A stretch of 64,000 nt of DNA from Takakia lepidozioides (lineage: Eukaryota > Plantae > Bryophyta). The stretch is from contig CM060732.1 in the NCBI GenBank assembly GCA_030704615.1, positions 42,780,001 to 42,844,000 on the forward strand. Direction: 5' to 3'. Made by a program: the position numbers and the translations under genes. The notes under the pieces were generated by a model, which saw only the letters and a program-made list of their open reading frames with translations, was not told the origin of the DNA and did no database searches. How positions within the stretch are numbered: position 1 is the first letter of the stretch; each line of letters begins with the position of its first letter. Below, one piece after another: positions 17,915-64,000 of the stretch.

Positions 17915-19221
17915 CTACAAGAAGATCACCTTATGCTTGTGAGTGCGGAGTGTAAGGATTAGTTTTGCACTTGTATTTTAAAGAGGTTGAGAGCTAGGAG
18001 AATTTAGCTCTTGTATCACAAGGCTTGCAAGGGGTTGCAAGGAAAGGTGCTCGAGTATTGCATGCACCAAGGAGTTGGAGAGCTTGAGAAGAAAGCTCTT
18101 GAGTCACAAGATTTTGCAAGGATTGTAAGGAGAAGTCTTATGTGTGTGGAAGCATGGATTCTAGGGTTTGAGAATCCTTTGTATGCATTATGGAGTCGAT
18201 GGTGTGCGCCATGGCTTGTGGAGAGTGACTAAAGGCTTGTTAGTGCTCATTTCACTATCAAGCTAGGGTTAAGCAAGTTCAAAGTGTGGATGTTGTGGAA
18301 GAGAAGCCAAGAGCTATATATGCTTGGGCTTGAAGACAACAAGGGCAAGCACTTGGAGCACTAAGAAGCTCAAGAGGTTTTGAAAGGGAGCATGTGAAGA
18401 AATCTTCCAATCATGGTGGTGTGGAGCCAAGCTTAGGGTGCCATTGGAAGGGCTTGGAGAACATGTGGTGGGAAATCCTTGAAGGGAAATCATCATTCAA
18501 TGTATGCATAGCTTCACCCTAACTATGTAATGTGACAAGAGGGGGAGGCAATACTTGGCTATTCATGCTCTTGGTAGTGCGAGCTTTGTGGTGGATAGTT
18601 GACCAAGCAAGTGGTGCATGTGTGGAGCATGCTCGCTTGAGTTTGTAAGTTCAAGTTTGAGAAGGGGAGCTCTTGAACTAGCAAGAGGTGAAGGCCTTTG
18701 AGATCCATTTGTGTGTGAAGTGGAGAGGGTTTGATTCATGTTATGATGAAGGAGAGCAACACATAGGCCAAGAGGTCATGAAACATGCATTCAAATGACC
18801 ACGGGGAGCACATGGATGATGGATTGGTGCAAGACCCCAAATGAGGCATATGGCGTGAGAGTGGGATCCAAGGCGGATTGCTTGGGAGCATTATTGTAAG
18901 TGACAAGCATTGCTCCTACACATTGAGATAATTTGTGTTGATTTGGAGCAATTGTCAAGTGATGAGGAGACAAAAATGCATGATTGCTCGGCAATGGAGA
19001 TATGGTAGTTTGCAATCAAATCCCAAGGACTAGAAGGGGGATTGATTTGGTGGACAATGACTTGCAAGTTGAGTTGGACCACTCTTGGTTGCACATTGGG
19101 GTGGAAGAGAGCAAGAAGATGCCTCTTATGACCACCTAGAGACCATATTTTTGCTTGAGTAGAAGCATAGAAGTCAAGGACTTGCATTCTAGCTCTTCAT
19201 TACAAACCCTAATAGTCTATG

Positions 19222-19602
19222 CTCAGACTATACCTCTGTTAGTATACCAAACAGGAGCTTGTCCCTTTGACTATACCTCTGTTGAGGTATCACCATATGT
19301 GAACCCTAATGTGAGACTATACCTCTGTTAGTATACCAAACAGAGCTTGTCCATTTTACTATACCTCTATTGAGGTATCACCATATGTGAACCCTAATCA
19401 GCTCAGACTATACCTCTGTTAGTATACTTGTCCTTTTACCTACCTCTGTTGAGGTATCACCATATGTGAACCCTAATCAGCTCAGACTATACCTCTGTTA
19501 GTATACCAAACAGAACCCTCATTTTTCAGACTATACCTCTGTAAAGGTATCATCAACATAAGGGACCCTAGCAACCTCAGACTATACCTCTGTTAAGGTA
19601 TC
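19222..19602 (+). repeat. Tandem array of 9 CTATACCTCTGTT-core units in the retroelement 5' leader
   Basis: Cores lie near 19228, 19270, 19316, 19358, 19407, 19439, 19486, 19530 and 19581. Alternate units form the hairpin ATACCTC-TGTT-GAGGTAT. Confidence 0.9.
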
Positions 19603-48812: not shown

Positions 48813-50040
48813 TGATGGTGCATGTTATGTGTTCGGTTAAGATGAAATGATAGATATCAATGTCGACTTTAGTCCATCCAAATTTGAAAATGAACCGTCG
48901 GACGACGGACGATCGTTTAGCTCCGGGCAATATGCTATTTTATTGTTTTTTAAATAATTATTTATTTTATAAATCTAAGGTTCGAGCATTGGACGATGGT
49001 GATTTTTATTATTTATTTATTTATTTATTTTTAATGTAGTTGGGATGACTACTAGGCGACGGCGACTGTCGGATGACAGTGGCCAAGCAATTTATTTTTA
49101 TTTTTATTTTTATATTTTTGTGTTTTGTTTTTGTCCATCGGACCGTTTTGCGACGGTGACGGCCGGATGATAGTTGGGTGACCGTTGGTTGACCCCGCGG
49201 TCCCGTCGCCATACCGACGGCGACCGCAAAGCGACGTGACAGCCCTCTCAAATTACTAAAATTAAATCTAATTGAATTTTTTTTCACGCGTATAATTTCC
49301 GGCAGACGTGGATACTTATGTGTCACACTCCCCTGCCCCTCCCTCGGTACCCAAAAATCGAGGAGTGGAAATAGAGTGGAGACATAGCAGCTCGATGGAG
49401 GCACTGATCTGTTAGGTCAAATTCCTGCAACCGCCATCCTGCAGCCTACATTCACTTAATTCCTAATAGGGCCGGATCTAAGGGCACTCATATGCAGGGC
49501 CCTCGTCTGTCTCTATTTATAGGGCCCTCGAATCCGGTGCCAAAATATGACTGATGTGGGCATTATGACCCTAGCTGATAGCTTGATACGGTGCTTGGTT
49601 TGATGAGAGTACATATTGATGGGTGACTATCAAATTGCATTGGTGGTGTATATTATGTGTTCGATTAAAGTGAAATGATAGATATCAATACCAACTTTAG
49701 TCCATCCAAATTTGAAAATGTCGGACGATGGACGATCGTTTAGCTTAGGGCGACATGCAGTTTTTTGTTTTTCTATTTTAAATAATTATTTATTTTATAA
49801 ATCTAAGGTTCGAGCAACCATTGGATGACGGTGATTTTTATTATTTATTTATTTATTTTTAATGTCGTTGGGATAACTGCTAGGCGACGGCGACGGTCGG
49901 GTGATAGTGGCCATGCAATTTATTTTTATTTTTATTTTTGTGTTATTCTTTTGTCCATACAACCGTTGTACGACGGTGACGGCCGGCCGATAGTTGGGTG
50001 ACCGCTAGTTGACCCGCTATATCGACGGCAACCGCAAACA
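48740..50040 (-). repeat. Inverted copy of the composite X-Y-X repeat, abutting the DUF641 ORF
   Basis: Reverse complement of 32490-33700. ORFs 47742..48812 and 32809..32994 start with nearly the same peptide, MQFDSHPSICTL.SNLTPY.ATSQ. Confidence 0.85.
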
Positions 50041-51499
50041 TAACATATTGAAGCAACTCTACGATACTCCCTAAATAACCTCCCCAAAAGAGGTATGTCA
50101 GTATAATAGATGTTCTTTACACGTATCCTTGTGCCCGAGATACCATTTATCGACTTGTTGAACCGGCTATGGTCGGTCATGACCATATGGATGACCGGCT
50201 CCCATATGTGTATTTTTAACAAATGCGCAAGATTCAAAATGTGCATATGTGCCAAAAATTCATTATGATGCAACCTCCAAAATACTATATATGGTTCATT
50301 GAAATGTCTTAATGACTAACTGTATAATCCATTCACTTTAAATTTGACCTTAATGACAGTCCATCCTGGTATCAACCAACCATTTCATTTTAATGGCGGT
50401 TCATCTTCACATCATCTATATCCAACCACCACACATTGTCAATTAATGCGGTTCATCTGTGCATCATCCATCTATCATCGATGTCTCGACGGACAGTACA
50501 TGCTTGCGTCCAATGGTCGATCCCATAATCCAATGGATTAATTGTTTTAATAGATCTTAAGTCCATATAGCATTCATTCTTGAGGGCTTGCACTGGCACA
50601 TGGTATATATATGTAACTCATCATTTGCAACACTTGTCTTGATATTTGTACTCGTGAAAGGTTGTAAAGCCCCATATTTGCTCAGTCGGAAAATAGCCCG
50701 TTTCATCTAAAACGGCGATACACATCTATAGTATATTTTTTTGGCGTATGAAGCCGTTAAACCTTTACAATGATATTTAGGTTAGGGTTAGTTTTTGCAG
50801 GTGGCTCGATCCTGGCCCTTCATGAGATCTAGGGCCACAAGGCAGCGTCGTGGGCTTTGGCCTGTGATGCATCGCCATGCGGCGGGCCACTACGGCTAAG
50901 GCTTTTTGTATAAAGACGGCGCCCTGACACAAGGTTAGGGCGATGCAACGACGTAATGGTGTGAGCCTTGCGCGTGAGCGCGCGAGCGTACGCTCACGCA
51001 GGAGTGACGTGGCGTGAGCCTGTACCCACGCTGACGTGGCGTGAGCGTCATGTCAGCAGGCTGATGTGGCGGCAAATGATGACGTGGCACTGCGTCGTCA
51101 TCTGCCACGTCAGCATTAACATGCGCCGCCTATAACCGAGGATGGTCCTATGACCGTGGGATTAATGCAGGGAATCCTTGGCTGAATACAATCAAGACTA
51201 CCATGAGGCCTACAATTGTAGCATCCAACATTGTGCAATTACAAATGTTTGTTTCACTTTTATAATTACGAGGACGAGAAAATATCCTCACAAAGTGTGC
51301 GCCATAGAGGCTGCCACGGGAAGACCTTCCTCCCTCCCCAAATAACAATGAGAGTTAGGATCATCTTCAAAAGATGATTGCAGTGCATAGCGACAAGAAG
51401 GCATGTAGACTTGCACATGTCCTGATTTTGTGAATATGTTATCAACCAGTTTGGGCAAGAGAGGTAAATTCATACCCTGCAAACATTTGTATTTCATAT

Positions 51500-54400
51500 T
51501 TTTGAAGATGATGGTTTGCGATCCCAAACGTGACAACTTCGTTCACCAGGGCACTCTGAGTTTCAACGAGGTCGATACTCTATTGCAGCGGGATACAATA
51601 CATGGGTAGCATCAACTATGCAATGTGGTATGTGGACGACCATGCTATGAATGTGAAATTCAAATCAATTCGTTTGCAACATCGTCGGCGGTGCAATGAT
51701 ATGGCGTCCCTTATCCCTCTATTATGCTTCCAACTATACTGAGTGAGCTCTGAGTGACAACTTTTAAAAGCACATGCATCATTGGGTCGTAGGCCCTGTC
51801 ATGAACAGCAGATGTCGAAGTGATCATTGTGTACACCCGACCATATCTTGGATCGGGCATTTCCGTGGTGCTTGCAACACGGGCTTGGAGCATTCTTGCG
51901 GACTCCACTTTGCCAAAGTGTTCAGCGGTTGGAGGGAAACGCCGAACGAGCTTTCCATCCCGTTTGGTTGGCCACAAGTGAGGATTTGCCGGAGGGACCT
52001 GAGAGGACGTAGAAGTAGTAGCACATGCATGCAGTTGGGGTTGTCTCGCAAGGGAAAAGTCTGCCTCCTCCAGCATTGCAATCTCCTAACTTGTGAGATG
52101 TGTTCCCACCTTGACGAGCCAAACGGTTGGAAGAGCTGGCTTCATCACCACGGAAGGACGCACAGTTCCATGCACACATCTACCACAATCATCTGCGCAG
52201 AACCAGAACTTGTGGTTCTTGGCTTCTGGTTGATGGACGCATCAAACCCGTGAAAGTTGGAGCAGGAGTCCGGGCACCACCTCTGGATATAGATGAAGTG
52301 TACTTCTTGAAATTAGTTGCCCTGATCGCTGTATTTCACATGAGACCCTGCACTTGTGCGTTCTATGTACCAAACGTGGTCGGGGCATGCGGACTCAAGC
52401 ACATCAAGGGGGTTGTTTCTCTCCTGCACCATTTCAGTGGCACTGTTTGATGCTGGAGCCTGCCGTCGTGTTGGAGGTTCCTTTGAGGTTCCGGACATGG
52501 ATCTGTCATGCAGGGAAACACGAGGCTTCGAGAAGTTATCACGGTCTGCCCTATGCGAATCGGAATCCGAACCAGGTGGAGTGTTCAATTTCCTCTTACA
52601 CGAATCTCTCCTCCCCTTCAAGATGTGGAACTCTAGAAACAAGTGGCGTTCCCTGGGCATACATGCTCACCGCCCGTAGTATCTTGCTTGGATCCCCAGA
52701 TCTGTTTGCAGCACGCAACATCAACTCCAATTTGTCCGGACCCTTGCCACCAACCCCACCTCGCAAGAAATCACGGTATCGGGTTTGTTGTTGCAAGGCA
52801 CGTATCAAATCATCTGTTGTTGTCACATACAAATCCCGACCTCGTTTCCCAAACTGTTGCAACCATGCGTTGTGCACAGTCTCTGCCAAATTGCAAGATG
52901 GCATGTCCGTCATTTCCTCAATGGACATGTTCTGCAAAGTGGAGAACCACACTTCAGAACAGTGCACAGGGAACAACATAAAGAAAGCAATGAGTCAAAA
53001 ATATGGAAAGTAAATGTATGAATAAAGCAAGAAATAGAAGCCTCGCACCATTGTCATGGCTGCTCCCCACTGTCTGTACCGGAAGTGCCAAAACGCCAGT
53101 CAATCTTCCAATGCTCTCATACTCTCAAGCGATGCAGCTCCAGAAGAACCACCAGGCACGAATTGTCTAGAACAAAGTGTCCGCCTCCTTCATTGTTCTA
53201 GCATCTTTGTACTTTTTGCACAATTTACGGTGCTGAGACTGCATCTTTGGTTTGATGTCCGACTTTGTATGTTTCTCCAAAGATTGTGTCCAATGGAATA
53301 GACATGTACGCTCTCTTCCCGGCATTGACACTTTTGAGTCGCCCGATCCGAAGACAATTCGAACAGCATTGAAATTCGCCTGAGCACTATCCGCCATGAA
53401 ACCTGCAAAATTTGGAGATGGCATCCCGTGGCAGCCCATAACACGTATCAGGGAATTCCACATGAGCTTATGGGATTCCGTATCCTCGGATTGCATGTCA
53501 AACTAATTGTCATAACTCGTTGGTACACTGGATCGTAGACATGACAAGCCATTGTCGTCCAATCTTTCACTCATTTCACATGATCAAACATAAGAAAACA
53601 ATTCTGCAAGTCCCCAGTCTTCTGCATCCGCTTTACGAGGCTAACCCCACTGCCCTCCCCAACAGTCGACATTTTGAAAAGAAATACTTTGATGGCACCT
53701 TGACCTGGGAAAACATTGTCCTGGATATAGTCGTACTTGCTCAGTCGTTTCAATTCCAAAATGTTGTCTATGTAGCCTCTGATCCCAGAGCCCATTCTCA
53801 ATGCATTGATCTGATGCCGAATGTTAGGTGAACTCAAAGTGGAGAAATGATCCATGACAAGGTCCAATGCTGCACCGTCAAGTTTAGTCCCCACAAAATC
53901 CCCTTCACTCAAAATATGGCTTTCCAATAAGGACTTGCTTGCGCCAAGAGCAATTGCAGATATTGTTGCGGATGGGTTTCTCTCGTACTCCTGTTTAATC
54001 AACCTCGATATTGTCTCAACACTCTCCCTGTAATCCCCCTTCGAGACAGGATGGTTATGGAAACCGAAATGCACACAAGCTCCTGTCATTGTTTTCAAAC
54101 GGTGGACAACATAGTACATTCTTGCTCCGCACAGCGCCAGGCAGGATGACACAAGTTTGCAGAATTTGCAAACGAAAGCGTTTGCCGGGTGGAGGGGCAG
54201 TCCCAGGCTTAAATGGATTTTCCGCCAGACCCTCCCACTCGCTTTGATTATAAACCCCAGACTGAAGAAAGTGTCTGCAATTCAAATTATCACACCTAAG
54301 GTGTCCATTGCAAACTGTTCTCCTGAAAACAAGCTTGTCTTCATTTTGAATATTGAATGTTTTTGTTCTGCACCATGGGTGCCCGTCGTGTTTCTTGTCC

Positions 54401-55056
54401 ATTCCGTGCATCATGATTGTTACACCTCCAACTCGCGGAGGAGGAGGCAGCTCGAATAGGATATCGCCATAAAAAATCTCTGGCAGGAACTTCACAGGCA
54501 CATGCTTCAAAGATTCCCAATCAATTTCTCGCAACTCATTTTTGAAACCTGCCATTCCTCCCATCGCCCGTAGCTTTGGAATGACACTACAAAACTCTAC
54601 TTCATCCGCTTCTCCAACTACAGTAGGAAGGACTGGATTTGGAATTTCACTTATGTCATCATCGGACGAATCCGAAAGCTCAACGATTGGAGTGGAGGAC
54701 GTCTGTTCTTTTTTCACCACCACCTCCCTCTTGTCTTCAACGACTGAAGCTGCAGTCTCGGGCGTCACATATGATCCAAGGGACTTTCGCCGAGGCTCTC
54801 TAAGTACTCTGTATCGACCAGGGCGCACTCTCCACTGGCTAACATGAGCCGTCTCATCACGGTTTTGGAAAGAGTATTTCAACAACTTCCCTTCCAAATC
54901 GTACACCTCTTTCTCCAAAAAGATGGAGCCATACTAAAGCTCAAACCGGGTAGCCAAGACATGTTCTAGAACAATTGCGAATCCATTGTCAAGGGCTTCC
55001 TTGGAGAACGGCACTGGTTTGTCGTCAGAGAAGAACTCCGCTTTAGAGGAAGCCAT
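51500..55056 (-). pseudogene. MULE-family DDE transposase with an N-terminal GCM/WRKY-like Zn domain; stop and frameshift lesions, at least one intron
   Basis: ATG at 55056 (MASSKAEFF..., in-frame TAG at ~54935). Zn-binding region: DGHPWCRT..CNGHLRCDNLNC..CGARMYY..CVHFGFHNHPV. Core: FLMFDHVKR; GFMADSAQANFNAV; TCLFHW (CxxH); CNLAETVHNAW. GT-AG intron at ~53048-52932. Confidence 0.8.
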
Positions 55057-56172
55057 CTTGCCTCCTCTCGTACGAAGATGCCTTGCTATCGCAGCTCTTC
55101 AGTGAAATCTGTTGACTGAGGTCTCCAGAACACTGTTGAAGAATGAGCAGAGAATATCACGGAGAAAGCTCACACGATGATTGTGCACATTCTGTTATTC
55201 CTTCCAGACATGCAGCCGTCCATTTTAATTACTTTTTTTGTGGGCCCTGTAGACAGAGTATCCCTAGGAGCAATTTCGGCAGCTGTTAAACCTTTATTCA
55301 GAACCTCATCAATAAACATAATAACCAGCCGACTTCTCGGAAGTGTGCCAAAGGATCTGAGGGTGGGATAGCAGATGAAGTAAATGCATCTTTATAACAA
55401 TATCAATTGATCATGTGCACCTGGAAAGTCCAAACTGTGAAACGAACGTGGGGTTGGCTTACAAGGATGAATGTGTATGATATCCAAAAATTGCTCATCA
55501 AACACTCGTTCATTTACATTTATTTGTCTGAGATTGTGCGCCAAATGGCCTTATATTTTTTATTCCACGGTGCCACGGTTCTGATGGCATAGGCATTGTC
55601 TCAGGGTGAGCAGTCAGACCAGCTAATTGTTTATATGCAATGTTATATTCATCTATAATATTTGTCGTTGTTATTTTCAATTATTGAAACCGTTCAAATA
55701 AACGACACGCCGTTCATTTTGGGCGACACACGTCAGACATCGATAACTACATTGTAGACGAACAGCTGTCCACTAATGGCTGGCAGGTGCACTAATAAGG
55801 GAACGACGTTTGTGTAACGGTCACGCGAGAGGGAATCCGATGCTTCTAGAGACAATCCCCAACGCAAGCAACTCCACAAGAAATCGAGAGTCACTTTGGC
55901 TTTCTAGTTTCCGCACTTAGAGGGAGAGAGGTAGTCAAGCTGGAGAGGGTTCCTTCTACGATACAAAAGATAAAGAAGTCATTTTATTTTACTTCCCTTA
56001 GAGAGAGACTGAAAGAAAGAGAGCAAATGACGAGGCGTTGTTTGATGGAGAACACAGGGCCACGGCAGCAGGTGAACGAATAGACTGCAACACAAGAGCA
56101 TACCGACAATGAGGCACTATGAAGCCATGCTGATTTGCTTTGTACTCCTCTGTTTATCCACACCAGCTATTT

Positions 56173-57006
56173 GTGACTGGCGGTACCGCCATTCACAGTT
56201 CTTGAGATCATAGAGTCAGTCTGATTGCCTTTCAAGCACTCCTTCTCTTTCATTCTGTAGCAGGAACCTGTGATTGTCAGCAACGTCATTCTCTTTCTTT
56301 TCAAAACCCTCATTCTGATACAACAGAAAGTGAGTGTCGGTGCCGACATCAACTATGATCCAGTATTGACTTACACCAAACGCAATGCATTCCATTCTAG
56401 TGTAGTGCGAGTGTCGTTAACGCCATTCGATTCTCCTCATGAGCTTCCTGAACCTGTATGCGTGGAGAGAGAGTGATGGTCGACATATTCAGTCATATAG
56501 TCTTGCATTGCATTTTCTCTGTTTCAGGTTGAGCAGATTAGAGAAGTGGAATGGCGGTACCGCCAATCACTTTTTTTGAGACCATACTGTAGATTCATGT
56601 AGAGTATCGATTGCAAAGTACATTCCAGACAGACAAGAAATAGTGATTGTTTGTGAAGATCATCACAATGGAGTCTCTCTGACTTATCTGCACTCACTTT
56701 TTGCCCTAAACTAGAGTGAGTGTCGGTGCCGCCAATCACTAAGACATATATTTCATTGCACCAAACCGATCCAGTAGGTCCTTCAAATGTAATGTTTTTT
56801 TATTGTCGTTAACGTCGTTCGCTAATGCTCAGAACCTCTCTGTACCTGCTGCCCAGAAACATAGTGATTGTCGGTACCGACCATCACTATGTAGTCATAT
56901 TGTCTTGGTTTGCATTCGTCTATTTGTGTAGATGGTTGTGAATGTCGGTACCGCCATTCAATGTTATTTGAGACGAGACAGACTGATGGTTGGTACCGAC
57001 ATTCAC
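56173..57006. repeat. Array of 24-bp palindromes, consensus GTGAATGTCGGTACCGACATTCAC (upstream cluster)
   Basis: Clear copies at 56173, 56330, 56407, 56547, 56716, 56864, 56938 and 56983. Degenerate copies at 56270, 56473, 56643 and 56799. Confidence 0.88.
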
Positions 57007-57056
57007 TATTTGCACATAACTCACTGTCTGATTGGCATGGCATCGTGCAGAAAACT

Positions 57057-60000
57057 ATGAAGTCCAAGCAGATAGGAACAAAGGCAAAAGGTTCTAGAGA
57101 TGGGGACGAGTCTGCCAAGAGCTCTGAGAATAGCGATGAAGCAGATGAACCTGAAGTGCACTACCTTGACAAGGTGAAAGAACTCATGTCATTCCGGAAG
57201 GTAAACTCTCAGGAGGTTATTAGGGAAATGCTCGTCTCTGGAGGGCGTCGGGACATCCCACTATGCCGGATGATATCTATGCCTGTTGTACGTCCTCCTC
57301 TTTTCCATGACATTACAAAATTGGAAACTGATTTCGTGCATGGATACAGACTTGGTTCACAAGTTTCTTATGTGTCACTGACGGATACAAATGGGAAAAG
57401 CACATTGGTGTCTCCCGAGATCACAGATACCTGGGATGAGTGCTGGAAGGATGTTAATGAGGAGTTCGAGCGAGGCCTCATGATGGGAAGAAACACCCAG
57501 CAGCAGCAAACACATGTTCTACGTTGGACAAACCACCGATTGCTGGCATGGATGGGATATATTCAGAAACATCACAAAAGCAAGCATGTTGCTGTAGAGG
57601 CAATGGTTTTGGATCCTGGAAACGACATCGCTAGACTTCTTACAGCTATGCACGACGTGAACAAGTAAGTCATCCTAGAGACTCCATTGCCTCTCCAATG
57701 TCTTGTTAATCCCACCAAAAAATGATGTTTACCAATGCATTGTTTCCAATCTTTTTGCAGATCAACAGAGAAATAGCATGTGACAACAAGCTTGGTCCAC
57801 ACACTATTCCGAATTCAGAGGATTGGTCTGATGAAGCTGGATGATTTTCGCACAGTACTCCACCCCGATATAATCAAGAAGTGCGAAACAGGAAGAGCTG
57901 CAGGCACTTGGTATTCTTTGACTCGAGAGGCGTTTCTGGAGTACATGTATGCGGTAAGGCCGAGCATGTACTCATTTGTCTTTCTGAATACATGTTTGTA
58001 TTTCGTTTTGTACTCATCCCTATTTTGATCAATGCAGCAAGAACTGGCAAAGGCAGCTGAGAAGGGGAAATCCGAATACTACCGCACTACAACAGAGGGA
58101 ACTTAGGACATTAAAGGGTATGAAGCAAAATAAAGGAGTATGAAATCCGCATAACCAAACTGATGTCCGCCTTCTCAAAGCAGCTTAGAATAGTAGATCC
58201 TGGCCTTGGAGATGAGTTCATTCTGCAGATCAAATCTCACTATGACAAGCATGTGCACCCGGAGATGCGCAGGAGAAATTGCACCGGCTGGCCATCTCCA
58301 TGGTCGACCCCCAAACCAAAATAAGATGGTTGGAGATTTGGAACTCAGATCAGACAGTGAAGGACTTGAATCAGTTCCCAAAGATCACTATACAACCTGG
58401 CACAAAGGTGGAAGGAATCAGTGACATTGTACTGGCTTCACAAGGTTACATTTTGGAGTCAGGTGTGTATTCAAAGAAATTCCATCTTTGTTGACTTCAT
58501 GAATGTGATGAGTACCTTATTTGCAAAACTGACAAATGTACCATTTGCAGCTGGAGAAGCGCGCAATCATTGTGCTCGAGCAGACTTTGAAGGACTTGAA
58601 CATTTCTATTGTTTCCCCGCCTCAAATGACATTGGAGGCATACATAAGGAAGTGGAGAGGTCTCACCTGGAGATACTGTTTTTTCCGAGAATTCTCCAAG
58701 GATGGTAACATTTTACGGTCCAACGACTTTGACAGTCAGGTTGGGGGAGAGTGGGCCATGATGCGAGTTGTGTACAGGTGCAATGTCCTGCTGGAAACTG
58801 TGTTGCCTCTTGTGAGAAATTGTTAGGCTTTGTTAGCAGTGTAATCACAGATCCAAAGTGAATGTCTGTGTCCTTCCAAAGCTAGAGATTGCATTCACCT
58901 GAATTAGGAACTTAGGGTGTGATTGCAGTGTCCTTGAATGGAATTTTGTGAATGTCGTTGACGACATTTAGATCCAGAGTTGTTGTGAGCTCCTGAGATT
59001 TATTGTACGTTTTGTATGTTCCATTGACTTTTTAGTGAGAGTTCCTCACTCGAGTTTTCTGAATGTCGTTGCCGACATTCACTTTCCTTGCAATGTTGTT
59101 GCCTCTTGTGAGAAATCGTTAGGCTTTGTTAGCAGTGTAATCACAGATCCAAAGTGAATGTCGGTGCCGACATTCACTTCTATGTCTGTGTCCTTCCAAA
59201 GCTAGAGATTGCATTCACATGGATTAGGAACTTAAGGTGTGTTTGCAATGTCCTTGAATGGAATTTTGTGAATGTCGTTGACAACATTCACATCCAAAGC
59301 TGTCGTGAGCTCCTGAGAGTTCCTTAGAGCTGTTCTGAGCTCCATTTCCTTCCTCATTTTTTTCATTCTGTGCTATTGGCATCTTACTCACTTCGCGCTT
59401 TGGTGGGTTGGGTTTTGTCTCGTGTTTCACAGGTACACGAAATATGTGCTTATGGATGGAAATCACCTCAGCAGTATTCCAGACTATCTTGACAAGTGGT
59501 CGGACCCTGCAAACGATCCAACCATGTACACTGCAGGGATATTGAAGGACTGGAGTCCTTCTCACTTCAGAGACTGTGGTTGGTACCTAGACTGCCCACC
59601 TGAGCACACGACCTTTCAAGAGCAGCACATGAAATATATGAACAATAATGCTGAGATGCTGGCGCCTCTGGATGACGAGGAGTACCAAAGAAACATAGCA
59701 ACATTGGCTGCCAAGGAACCTGATTCTCAGGAAACGACGCAAAAGGGCAAGAAGGCGGGGCGCAAACCAAATGACAAAGCTCCTGATGTCATAGCCATGT
59801 CACCGGCAAAGCCAAAGGACAAAGACAAGTCCAAGGACAAGGGGAAGGAGAAAGAAAAGGAGAGTGGGAAGGACTTCACTGCTGGAAGGTATACCCGCAC
59901 AATTCAGTGCGTGTTCGATGCCAGGCCACACCCTTCCCGTGCTGATTCGACAGGAGAGATTAAGATTGTCAATGAGGGTTGGCTGGCGATGATGTAGAGT

Positions 60001-61294
60001 CGAAAGAGAGGATACATTGGGGTGCCATCGCCTACCTGGGGCAACATGATCTCATTCCTTAATCTGGTAAGAATTTGATTTTCTTTCCTTTGCATCTGTA
60101 AGTGTCATTTGCAGTATTAAAGTTTGTTTCACCGCACACGAAGGTGGGACCAGTGTTCACCTGCAACAGACATGTTCAATTTTAGAATGAAGACAAGATT
60201 GTTTTCAAATAAAACATTTGCGGCTGACATGGTCATTCTCGACATCCCGGACGGCCAAGCTGTGCCAGAAGTTCTTCCGAAGGGCAAGACGTCAAGCTGG
60301 AACAAATTTGATGACAACTACTGGAGTTGGGTGTTCGGGTTCTGTAATAATTTCCTCTCTGATGTAGGGACACTTCTGGTTTTTCAGTCATGTGACAAAG
60401 ATAATCGTCGAGCATTGGCATCATACCTGAAGTCCTCTGGGTTTGAAGTTTTGCGCACATTGAATTGTGTGAACAGCCTCTACCTTGTGAAAGGGGGTTA
60501 TCCTGGTCAGCTGGTATGCCGTCTCCTTTCTGTTTGTGCTTTCATGCTGCGTTTCAATGTTCTTTGCAGCTCCACTCTAGAAGAATCTGTAATGATCGAC
60601 ACCGATCATCATAGATTCGTGACAAAACATATTGTTGTATGCATGTGTTTTGAATAGCCAATGTACAAACTTCCACTATAGTTTGTGTTTACCACCCTAA
60701 CCTGCAGTCTTTGGCAGACGAGGATGTTCGAGGCGGTCTGCCTGCGGAGGATTCGCACCTCAAAGACACCATCCTCCGTCCGTAGCTTTGAGATTTCTGA
60801 CCAGGGTTGTTTCGTCAACCCCCCGTATGAGCCGCATGTCGATGACATTTTGTACAACTTCATGCAGTCCAGTCAGACTCTCAAGAGACCAGATGGCACT
60901 CCCTGGAGAGGTGCAAAGGAAAAAACCCCAGCGTTCATGCAGACACTGCTAGAGTCATGCAGCCACCATTCTGCACAGGTGGTCGATCTTTCTGTGTCCA
61001 CAAGTTCGTTCTCTCCCTTCTGAATTGATTTTCTTTCACCAGTTTCATCTTCTTAAATCCCCCACCCACCAACCTGTTCATGTCCTCATGTCTGGTGCAG
61101 GAGCAACTTACCATGCATGCAAGGCAGGCGGAAGAAGCCTTTTTGGCATGGAGGGTGATTCTGACCTTTACAAGACAGTGCTCCTCCCCCTTTTGTCTGG
61201 CTCCACTTCAGGCACACAGACTGAGAGGATTCAAATCCGAAATGATGACGATCCCGAGGATAAGCAGGTCGACAACAACTTTTCATGTGAGTAA
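57057..61294 (+). pseudogene. Multi-exon gene: ParB/Srx-like N-terminal domain plus a beta-class N4C/N6A DNA methyltransferase-like C-terminal domain; carries stop and frameshift lesions
   Basis: Exon 1 has RRDIPLCRMISMPVVRP...(MFYV-/-)NHRLLAW, the ParB DGxHR box with indels. Later exons have ADMVILDIPDG (motif IV position), FCNNFLSDVGTLLVF, PWRGAKEKTPAFMQTLLESCSHHSAQVVDLSVST/GATYHACKAGGRSLFGMEGD (motifs X-I-II). GT donor sites near 57665, 57954, 58463, 58779, 60067, 60514 and 61004. Confidence 0.72.
58800..59320. repeat. Intronic ~296-bp tandem duplication carrying 4 more 24-bp palindromes
   Basis: tgttgcctcttgtgagaaat starts at 58801 and 59097. Palindromes lie at 58948, 59059, 59154 and 59268. 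Confidence 0.88.
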
Positions 61295-61719
61295 GTCCTA
61301 AACCCACTTTGGGAGCCATATTCAATTTCTCGGACATCAATTTTACAGTAATAATTTTTTTCGGGCAAGAAAGGCAACGATGGATCTTCAGGAGATACCC
61401 CCATTTGTGGCGAGACTGTTTTCGACAGCCCCCTTTCCAATTTTCTGCTTCCCGTGTATGCTGAAACAATGGCACTTCATGCGGCCGAGTCTCTATCCCC
61501 TGACTTTTTATTGCCCAGCCGCACGAAGCCAGCGTAGATCCGGAGTTCTTAAATACTTAGACTTAGATGCAGAGGACGCGGGGATACATTGTACTGACTC
61601 TGAGTCAGACTGAACTTTGTTCTTTTAATGTTCTATTCCATCCTCTTCGGAAAACATTGAATCCCCTTACTCCACCGTAGTTGTTCCGGCAGAAAAAAAA
61701 AGAATCAGAGAATCCACTT

Positions 61720-62100
61720 TCATTAAAATGGCAATATGTATGAATCCATCCCACAAACCCCACTCACTCTTGTCATATCCATTGTGCATTCATCTACTGT
61801 GTATTCATGCGTGCTCCATTCATGAATGTTTTCCATTATTCAACATCCATTGTACATTCATCCATTGTACTCTGTAATCCACCCCACAAACCTACCACAC
61901 TCATGTCATATACATTGTGCATTCATCTACAGTGTATTCATGCATCCTCCAGTCATAAATGTTTTCCATTATTCAACATCCATTATACATTCATCCATTT
62001 TACTTACCCATCCACATTCATCCATCTACTTTCATTTTTCGCACTCATCCATCTGTTTATCATCCACTCTACATTCATCCATCCTTCATTCATCTGTTGC
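61720..62100. repeat. Low-complexity CATC/CATT-rich imperfect tandem repeat
   Basis: Blocks such as cattcatctac, tgttttccattattcaacatccat and cattcatccat recur. Confidence 0.7.
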
Positions 62101-63021
62101 TTTCAGGTGGGAATGACCACGTCCTTTTATTATGTCGTCCAGCTTGTTTCTGCGGTAAAGGGTGCTCTTCCGCGGGAATACACTCCACTTCTTCCTTGGC
62201 GCGTGGTGACGCGGCCTTCAAGCACGATGACGTGGAGTGAGCCCTGTGATGTGGCGTTGGCGCAAGGTGACGTGGCGTGAGCGCAGCGACCAGGCTCACG
62301 CCGAGGCATCCCTGAGGGCGATGTACTCGGGTGTTAGTGTACATGTGATTTTGGTGTACAAGCTTTGGATGAGAGCTGCTTAGTGCCTGATTCGTGTGTT
62401 CCTCTCGCGCGTTGCTTGCTCTTTCCACTCGCCTCTTTGTTATGCAACCTCGCTTCTTGAGAGGAAAGGAGTATATGCTTCAGGCTTGTTTTATGGTGGA
62501 GAGAAGCCGGGTACTCTAGGCGTGGTGGATCCTGCCCGCACTGTCAGGATCAGTTAGGTCTTTTCGCGGGATTTGCTCTACATCCTGCTGCCTAAGTGGT
62601 TCGCTAATGCGTGTGGGCGCTCCTCGCTTTGCCATATTTTCTCCTGCTGCTGCGATTTTGCCGTCTCACGATGTGTGTTGGGGTGTGATTGCAGGGGATG
62701 GCTGCTGTTCATGACCTGTCTTGTGTAGCTCGCAGAGAGGGGGAGAGCCTATTTCTTCAGATTAGAGTGGCACTTGCTATCGAAGCTAATCCTAGTGTAG
62801 AGGCTGACCCTGCTGCAACTTCTCAGTCTGTTGGTGTTGTTATTGTTGCTCATCCCGTTGTTTCTCACCCTGTTGACATTCTTGCTGTTGCTAACACTAC
62901 CAACGGCGCGCGGCCTGGCAGTGTTGCTTTGCCAGCGTCGCCACTTCCTGAGCCGGCTACTTGCGTTCCAGCCCTTGTTGTTTCATTGGGTTCTCCTAGT
63001 GGTAATGGAGGTTTACTATTT

Positions 63022-63455
63022 CATGAGCGCATGAGCCCATGAGCCCATGAGCCTATGAGCTCATGAGCGGACATCCGCGGAATTGGAATTTTCCTGCCTT
63101 TATTGACGGTGTTATGTCCTCTTACCTCGGTAATAGGGTCTGTTTCTCCTGGTCCAGGATGTGGAATGAGGTATTTCGGCGCCATTATTCCCAAGAGCAG
63201 TGTGCTAAAATGGTGTTTTGAAGACATCCACCGGGGTATTTCGGCACCGAAATTACCTCTTAAAATGTGATATAGTGCGGTATTTAATGGCGCAGAACGG
63301 GCTATTTGGGCGCCGAAATACCCAAGTGGAATGTGCTGAAGTGCCTTGTGCTGAAGGCTTCCATCGCGATATTTTGGTACAGTAATTCATCCGTGGAATT
63401 TTTTGAGGCCCATATAACAAGGCGCGCATTGGGCTATTTCGGCGCCAAATTTCCC
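63022..63455. repeat. CATGAGCC octamer run (63022-63068) and palindromic TATTTCGGCGCCGAAATA motifs at ~65-bp period
   Basis: Motifs at ~63172, 63237, 63303 and 63435. Confidence 0.7.
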
Positions 63456-64000
63456 AATAGGAATGTTAGAAACGGCAGGGTTTTCATGGCTTCAAGTTCT
63501 CGGCTCGATGGTGTGCATAAATTACTTGTAGGGTTCTTCAATGAAGTTTACGTCTCTTCTGCTTTTATTATACATTTTGGTTGGCGGAAGAAATGTAGGG
63601 AATCGGACAAGCAGTCTGAACACAATGATTTTTCAAATCGTCAATATTTTCATTAAGTGTTTCAGAACTGTACAACAAAAGAATCCAAATGAGACTTTGC
63701 TATGGTGAGGATCCGCTATCACTGTCCGATGCATCCCCGGCCTCATGCAAGGATGGCTGCCTTCCACCTGCCTCCGAACCTGCACTGCCGCTACCGCTGT
63801 TACTCTGAGAAGCCCTCCCCTCAAAAATACCATCCTCACCAGCCGGAACTGTCCACCTGGGTGCGGAAGTGTCCTCAACATTCCCCTCGCTCTCGGACGC
63901 GGATTCTATTACGAACTTCCCTACTCTGCCTTTTTCACAATTCTATGTTTGGCCTCACGCCTCATTATAATTCTCTGCTCATTCCCGTATGTCAATTGCT

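Follow-up and report, generated by a model that had tools for sequence, protein, structure and literature searches.

The window analysed here is a 64,000-nucleotide (64-kb) stretch of contig CM060732.1 of the bryophyte Takakia lepidozioides. It reads as eukaryotic, with short GT-AG introns, and contains two genes that diverge between 55056 and 57057: a decayed transposase gene and a multi-exon gene, hereafter the accessory gene, in which a ParB/Srx-type domain is combined with a methyltransferase-like domain. Copies of a 24-bp palindrome are present in the spacer between the genes and in one intron of the accessory gene (Table 1). No other copy of either gene was found in the 64-kb window. The best explanation of these features, to which we give about even chances when all its parts are taken together, is that the region represents a single dead member of a highly abundant land-plant family of Mutator-like DNA transposons, the accessory protein of which would bind the palindromes as a dimer and act in cis on its own element.

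Table 1. Features at the locus and in its surroundings, given as positions in the window
Feature	Position	Strand	Remarks
Decayed Mutator-like (MULE-type) transposase gene	51711..55056	-	Points away from the accessory gene
Upstream array, 10 copies of the 24-bp palindrome	56173..57006		Intergenic, between the transposase and accessory genes
Accessory gene, ParB/Srx plus beta-class amino-methyltransferase-like (by sequence)	57057..61294	+	Pseudogene in the window; ~990 codons, 8 exons
Exon 1, predicted ParB/Srx domain	57057..57664	+	IPLCRM..VRP; DGNHR box damaged to WTNHR
Intronic array, 4 full and 1 truncated palindrome copies	58857..59291		Inside a 320-bp duplicated block
Methyltransferase-like domain	60226..61180	+	Equivalents of motifs IV, I and II
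Second palindrome family TATTTCGGCGCCGAAATA, 4 copies	63167..63466		Outside the described element

The accessory gene and its relatives

The accessory gene starts with an ATG at 57057 and ends with a stop codon at 61292-61294; its exons are located on the plus strand at ~57057-57664, 57761-57953, 58038-~58470, 58553-58779, 59433-60066, 60211-60513, 60720-~61009, and ~61101-61291. Two of the introns were confirmed by spliced contigs of paralogues from a probable RNA run, which join 60066 to 60211 and 60513 to 60720; from these joints it follows that paralogues are transcribed and spliced. In some copies, DNA contigs show a joint at 60130/60211 that connects opposite strands.

The copy in the window carries lesions, as the initial annotation had already noted. 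An in-frame TAG is present at 57774-57776, where other copies have TCG, and a further TAG at 59996-59998. Frameshifts occur in 58038-58470, an example being the base absent after 58268, where other copies have an extra A. At 57524-57530, ~3 nt are missing, by which the VWDGNHRL of the family has become RWTNHRL and the DG of the DGNHR box has been destroyed; other copies carry extra letters here, with loose ends reading W-D-G-N-H. Alignment of public contigs to the stretch (6691 contig alignments of 85-100 % likeness, from a DNA run of the source organism) revealed that the lesions are private to the window copy. The number of these alignments attests to a high copy number of the family.

Relatives of exon 1 were found at 37-52 % identity, and a profile made from them matched 943 clusters (at 50 % identity) with E ≤ 1e-3, 450 of which with E ≤ 1e-10. 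The family includes proteins annotated as hypothetical in the ferns Adiantum nelumboides and A. capillus-veneris, and Adiantum has multiple such genes. The family protein consists of a predicted ParB/Srx N-terminal domain, a linker of ~500 residues, and a beta-class methylase-like C-terminal domain. No ParB, PF01555, or MULE (Mutator-like element) match was obtained from Pfam with any of the exon and open reading frame pieces, the fern proteins, or the intact proteins from metagenomes. A profile locus search with a six-sequence alignment returned no loci.

The N-terminal ParB/Srx domain

The first part of the motifs read in the initial annotation, IPLCRM..VRP, is present in the window copy, as are the C-terminal DMVILDIPDG and EK..F...LL...S...VVDL..GR..FGMEGD, whereas the DGxHR box, which it had also placed in this copy, is intact only in relatives. 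Across 62 sequences, DGNHR..AW and IPLCRM..VR hardly vary. An AlphaFold2 (AF2) model of the closest intact N-domain (P0001), built on the 62-row alignment, had a mean predicted local distance difference test (pLDDT) value of 87.5. Among the PDB structures retrieved with it by Foldseek, the top ~37 rows are all Noc, ParB, PadC, sulfiredoxin, KorB, SbnI, or free serine kinase (SerK), albeit with weak E-values, from 1e-2. An exhaustive VIA structure search, which is independent of Foldseek, placed members of the ParB/Srx superfamily at all of ranks 1-11 (Z 7.6 to 2.8): KorB (Z 7.6), PadC (7.3), the N-domain of pNOB8 ParB (6.4), a serine kinase (6.3), and plant sulfiredoxin (6.1), the remaining ranks being taken by Atu1540, SbnI, human Srx, Spo0J, SspE, and BrxU. 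No row from outside the superfamily fitted the folded N-domain in this search. Because the ranks of both structure searches coincide with the near-invariance of the two motifs, the ParB/Srx assignment of the modelled N-domain, which had been proposed from its motifs, is considered secure. Sequence searches with this domain gave no ParB_N match in Pfam at E ≤ 5, and its profile retrieved no ParB, or anything else relevant, from the PDB sequences. The nearest language-model neighbours of the P0001 N-domain are fungal DUF3723 clusters (0.93-0.94); Pfam gives no DUF3723 on these proteins.

The C-terminal methyltransferase-like domain

In the window, the equivalent of motif IV, DMVILDIPDG, is encoded at 60226-60255 and is followed by WRGAKEK..F..LL, the motif I equivalent VVDLSVST, and the motif II equivalent GRSLFGMEGD. 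The most complete relative is the 832-residue fern protein P0175, the end of which reads DFIFLDLPFGG ... GWLLIMAS ... EPWRGALQRS ... LEFGCGTAPILAAC..GRACASIDSD. A trimmed alignment (A4) of this region of P0175 with stop-free exon translations of the window, L001, L006, L007, and L008 (L numbers denote loci) was used for the profile searches; a first alignment of the domain (A3) had been dropped, as exon fragments were misplaced in it. Among PDB sequences, the A4 profile matched CcrM with an E-value of 2.7e-6, aligned from DLIFADPPY (motif IV) to DPFFGVGTT (motif I), M1.HpyAVI with 1.8e-5, and M.RsrI with 2.8e-3; weaker matches were M.MboIIA and an N4-cytosine (N4C) methyltransferase. PF01555 clusters are the atlas neighbours of the C-domain. 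The AF2 model of the C-domain is poor (pLDDT 51.6), with M1.HpyAVI, M.BceJIV, M.MboIIA, and CcrM still near the top of the structure search, ranks that are supportive only. Pfam gave no PF01555 match; the sole match was Methyltransf_23, with E 0.04, on the fern protein. On the basis of its motif order, IV ... X ... I, and of these profile matches, the C-domain is assigned to the homologues of beta-class N6-adenine (N6A)/N4C amino-methyltransferases, which agrees with the initial annotation. A candidate motif IV, 'NPPY' at ~60820 in exon 7, was rejected as a chance occurrence, since it is not conserved in relatives.

The catalytic tetrad (D/N/S)-P-P-(Y/F/W) has not been kept. It reads DIPD in the window, DMPE in L001 and L007, DLPD in L006, and DVPS in L016, so that the departure from the canonical motif IV, first seen in the window copy, holds across the clade; the pattern of the window clade, D-[ILMV]-P-[DES], is degenerate in intact copies too. 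The ferns have DLPF or DVPF. A similar picture is obtained for the FxGxG loop of motif I: ferns have FGCGT, and the window clade has A/S-S-T-G in its place. In motif II, the acidic residue of G-[IM]-E has been retained. Methyl transfer in the window clade would thus appear unlikely from the motifs, while binding of the cofactor or of DNA by its C-domain may persist. Because the tetrad and the FxGxG loop are degenerate and the acidic motif II residue has been kept, the methylase-like domain more probably serves to bind DNA or a cofactor than to catalyse a reaction. Members of the fern clade, in which DLPF and FGCGT are kept, could still methylate.

These observations bear on the possibility that the protein is an active N6A/N4C DNA methyltransferase, tethered by its ParB domain, that methylates the centres of the palindromes (GGNNCC-like) or spreads over the element, the mark blocking silencing by 5-methylcytosine (5mC) or flagging the element as self. 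The homology to active enzymes is significant, motif II is conserved, ferns keep DLPF and FGCGT, and the same function has been proposed for algal proteins (PMC12477816). The replacement of the aromatic residue of the tetrad by D, E, or S and the loss of the glycine loop in the window clade, intact copies included, nevertheless make such an activity quite unlikely in our estimate, and the CpG-to-TpG decay of old arrays described below suggests past 5mC methylation.

The palindrome arrays in the window

The consensus of the 24-bp palindrome, GTGAATGTCGGTACCGACATTCAC, has five matches at ≤3 mismatches, versus none in 100 shuffles. At ≤8 mismatches, 14 copies are present in the element, 10 at 56173-57006 and four at 58948-59291, next to a truncated one near 58857. 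Two weak matches elsewhere in the 64 kb (41455 and 63234, with 7-8 mismatches) are at chance level, which is 0-3 per shuffle. Within the element, the palindromes are confined, as was claimed at the outset, to the region upstream of the accessory gene and to the largest intron of this gene. The core in the upstream array is TCGG-TA/TG-CCGA, and the last copy of this array ends 51 bp before the ATG. The central part of the intronic variant, TCGTTGACGA, differs from its upstream counterpart, TCGGTACCGA, at two positions, in addition to the change of the central dinucleotide from TA to TG. The palindrome has been preserved between the two variants, as the differing positions mirror each other.

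The second palindrome family in the window, TATTTCGGCGCCGAAATA, has a spacing of 65-132 bp and the same TCGG-NN-CCGA core (TCGGCGCCGA). No relative of the ParB-methylase or transposase gene was found in 62400-64000; this array may be the edge of a related element that is cut by the end of the window.

The divergent transposase gene and the borders of the element

In a study on red algae, homology of accessory genes had led to a false classification of elements as MULEs (10.1101/2025.02.11.637652), and for that reason the transposase was examined on its own. The minus-strand gene, running from 55056 down to ~51711, contains many stop codons and frameshifts. The motifs FDHVK, MADSAQANFNAV, CLFHW, and NLAETVHN can be read in it. 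A scan of metagenome contigs with a core piece of the transposase yielded 57 loci at 32-61 % identity; overall, relatives are present in 57 or more loci at 32-77 % identity. One of these, L012, is intact and has a C..C..HxH pattern that reads as a zinc finger, FDHVK followed by CDSAQANFNAV, CLFHW, and NLSETVHN, and an intron whose position matches that in the window gene. At its C-terminus, L012 carries a CxCxnCxH motif that Pfam matches to SWIM below threshold (E 0.04). A D..D..CxxH..N-x-x-E pattern is visible in the transposase sequences. The named atlas neighbours, to be taken as a lead only, are MULE, ZSWIM1-3 RNaseH-like, FAR1, FLYWCH, and DBD_Tnp_Mut clusters (0.82-0.89). The architecture of the transposase is, as far as its motifs indicate, of the Mutator type, and the gene is a putative member of the MULEs.

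The sole motif shared by the flanks of the element is a 16-bp one, GTGACGTGGCGTGAGC, which is present in direct orientation at 51004-51047 and 62223-62283. The ends of the relatives are not crisp, none showing a clean terminus.

GTGACGTGGCGTGAGC occurs in clusters with an ACGT core, G-box-like, at 50960-51120 and 62200-62314 on both sides of the element, the flanks being otherwise dissimilar. Downstream of the accessory gene, at 61743-62008, a 133-bp tandem duplication (86 % identity) is rich in CATTCATCCAT units; a short unit similar to that of this duplication is located at 50396-50474. A 27-nt inverted repeat (89 % complementary) links 54324-54350, in the transposase coding sequence, with 60181-60207, in the intron before the methylase-like exon.

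Gene, transposase, and palindromes in other loci

A head-to-head arrangement of a transposase and a ParB-methylase gene was observed in 10 further independent loci. Seven of these were reached through the transposase (L016/17, L018, L034/35, L042-44, L045/46, L049/50, and L058/62), with the ParB-methylase gene located upstream and in opposite orientation. In the three fetched via the ParB domain alone, L068, L069, and L070, a transposase gene lies upstream and is divergent, that of L068 being 58-77 % identical to the one in the window. The link between gene and transposase that the initial annotation expected was thus recovered, but not in every lineage: ~9 distinct transposase loci lack a ParB-methylase gene over the 5 kb or more of sequence available upstream. 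The accessory gene is carried by some lineages of the transposase family and absent from others.

Loci in which a ParB-methylase gene was missing within 5-9 kb upstream of the transposase are L022/L023, L026, L028, L029/30, L036, L047, and L059/60.

Palindromes accompany the accessory gene in several other loci as well. L006 has 21 sites with the TCGGGTCCGA core versus 0.16 expected, five of which are located upstream of the gene, 12 in introns, and four elsewhere. In L070, eight copies of GACCCTCTCGGCGCCGAGAGGGTC, most of them perfect, end ~200 bp before the gene. L070 and L006 come from the same assembly, yet their palindromes have different arms. In L068, ACCTTGCGTCAACGCAAGGT has four copies around the gene start, four within an intron, and three at the far end. 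Decayed palindromes of 26-30 bp, with TTGG..CCAA or TCGG..CTGA cores where younger families have TCGG/CCGA, were detected in the older metagenomic copies L016 (1150-1306 and 4676-5259), L034 (2678-2985), and L049 (2823-5050); these cores look like TCGG-NN-CCGA sites in which CpG has decayed to TpG, as expected from the deamination of methylated CpG.

Taken together, a palindrome co-occurs with the gene, with arms specific to the subfamily, in at least six lineages, and the palindrome arrays travel with the accessory gene, in the shared promoter spacer and in the intron. Under one strict definition, sites were restricted to loci that have an accessory gene, the transposase-only loci being devoid of them. 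The palindrome subfamilies share a CG-N4-CG core, mostly TCGG-NN-CCGA, around which the arms vary between subfamilies.

L046 contains two separate ParB-domain gene fragments (2458-2975 and 18637-19366) on one 20-kb stretch, the first of which has four AACYCAAGCTTGRGTT palindromes upstream.

A different reading of the arrays is that they are recognised in cis by the transposase or by host transcription factors, as regulatory or subterminal sites, and that the ParB-methylase protein has another target. The arrays do sit in a bidirectional promoter spacer, the transposase carries a putative N-terminal zinc finger, and in L068 and L006 copies are also present beyond the transposase gene, near the end of the contig. 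In En/Spm elements, repeated TnpA motifs serve as regulatory or subterminal sites, and we take the half-site CCGACA to resemble this TnpA motif. Such palindromes are, however, lacking from the ~9 distinct transposase-only loci, each with at least 5 kb of upstream sequence, and L006 combines its 21 sites with an accessory gene and no transposase. Moreover, the arrays hug the start of the accessory gene and one intron rather than the ends of the element. We consider this reading unlikely.

Alternatively, the gene could be a captured passenger of prokaryotic origin without a role in the element, in the manner of Pack-MULEs, with the arrays representing neutral local tandem duplications. In keeping with this idea, many copies are dead, among them the one in the window, whose intronic array grew by a 320-bp duplication, and the linkage of gene and transposase is not universal. 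On the other hand, long open exons have been kept across lineages in which the ParB domain is 24-54 % identical, with the same residues invariant; the gene order has been kept and transcripts are spliced; and palindromy and core have been retained while the arms changed. With these points weighed, a mere passenger seems very unlikely.

Proposed role of the accessory protein

Under the favoured explanation, in which the accessory protein would read the palindromes of its own element, its most likely action would be either to maintain access to the bidirectional promoter region or to label this region as self. This would be analogous to what is done by VANC, the anti-silencing proteins of the MULEs of the VANDAL type in Arabidopsis, and to what has been proposed for the ParB-domain proteins of algae. 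In the window clade, the action would probably take place without methyl transfer.

A more specific version, which we regard as quite improbable, holds that the protein is a eukaryotic ParB-type nucleotide-switch clamp encoded by land-plant transposons. It would load at parS-like CG-N4-CG palindromes carried by the element, the arms of which would co-diversify with it, spread over its own element, and shield or mark the latter against silencing by host cytosine methylation, the methylase-like domain being a non-catalytic DNA- or base-flipping reader.

Several observations weigh against the favoured explanation. Bacterial parS is not read by the N-domain of ParB itself, and the linker of ~500 residues has no recognisable domain that could serve as the DNA-binding module; the zinc finger of the transposase or host factors could read the palindromes instead. 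The distribution is uneven as well: the accessory gene has no transposase within 4-5 kb in L006 and L007, L007-L010 keep one intronic palindrome copy each, and the AACYCAAGCTTGRGTT palindrome of L046 has a core unlike that of the others. The co-occurrence of gene and palindrome with subfamily-specific arms, foreseen in the initial annotation and recovered in the lineages mentioned above, does not extend to L042, L069, and the L001-L005 lineage, which carry the gene and in which no arrays were found; furthermore, paralogous copies are not independent events. As for the transposon itself, the initial annotation of a MULE transposase stands as regards a decayed, divergent minus-strand gene with Mutator-type motifs; Pfam, in turn, gave no MULE match on the window transposase or on the intact L012 and L011 proteins, no terminal inverted repeat was found between 49000-52000 and 61200-64000, and no target-site duplication was found.

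Comparison with known systems

The likeness to VANDAL elements lies in the combination of a Mutator-superfamily element with an accessory protein and with subfamily-specific arrays of short motifs in its own non-coding DNA. The resemblance to VANC is one of mode of action only, with no evidence of homology, and the VANC motifs differ from the palindromes. To our knowledge, VANC has no ParB or methylase fold. The VANC anti-silencing proteins are also cited in the study on red algae (10.1101/2025.02.11.637652).

A comparable protein has been described for Ectocarpus. It is 1104 residues long, combines a ParB-like with an N4C/N6A methyltransferase domain, and has its gene on the strand opposite to the transposase within Sola1-1_Ec32 (PMC12477816, citing Iyer et al. 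2011, Petroll et al. 2025). In both cases, the two domains are present in one protein of ~1000-1100 residues that is encoded opposite the transposase of a large DNA transposon, and in both the hypothesis is that the protein binds and modifies its own element. Unlike Sola1-1_Ec32, the present family is found in land plants (ferns and plant-associated metagenome contigs) and has a Mutator-like instead of a Sola1 transposase, its palindrome arrays are documented, and the tetrad is degenerate in most lineages; the two are likened by domain architecture, not by sequence homology.

The Plavaka elements of red algae carry PAG2, with a PF01555 methylase and a SET domain, and PAG3, with a ParB-like and a 2OG oxygenase domain, and have inverted-repeat arrays beside PAG3 (Petroll et al., bioRxiv 10.1101/2025.02.11.637652). 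Here too, a ParB-type domain is paired with a nucleic acid-modifying one in giant DNA transposons and inverted-repeat arrays adjoin the ParB-domain gene. In Plavaka, however, the two activities belong to separate genes, ParB is fused to an oxygenase instead of a methylase, and the transposon is of the EnSpm/Plavaka type.

Fusions of a ParB domain with N6_N4_Mtase are known from bacteria and phages, as are the methylases of ParB-Tls loci (Iyer et al. 2016, PMC4738411). The family shares with them the N-terminal ParB domain, the C-terminal beta-class methylase in which motif IV precedes motif I, and the profile similarity to CcrM. In contrast to these fusions, the family gene is eukaryotic and intron-bearing, has an insert of ~500 residues and a degenerate DPPY, and is recognised by no Pfam model at threshold. 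A survey of eukaryotic adenine methylases listed Dam-like enzymes fused to ParB-HTH (helix-turn-helix) in chlorophytes and chytrids, and few adenine methylases in land plants (PMC4738411).

In conclusion, the element is a variant of a recently published kind, the concept having already been published for algal transposons (PMC12477816; bioRxiv 10.1101/2025.02.11.637652). New are the setting in a Mutator-like element of a land plant, a palindrome core that is conserved while the arms are specific to the subfamily, and a catalytic motif that has degenerated. In land plants, ParB-domain plus PF01555-related genes form a large family that lacks annotation, being missed by Pfam and unlisted in surveys of eukaryotic adenine methylases. 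Natural specificity swaps, by which the algal hypothesis becomes directly testable, are offered by sister subfamilies that share the core within one genome but have different arms. If the protein reads its own palindromes, plant transposons would have, next to VANDAL/VANC, a second way of recognising and acting on themselves, built from prokaryotic parts.

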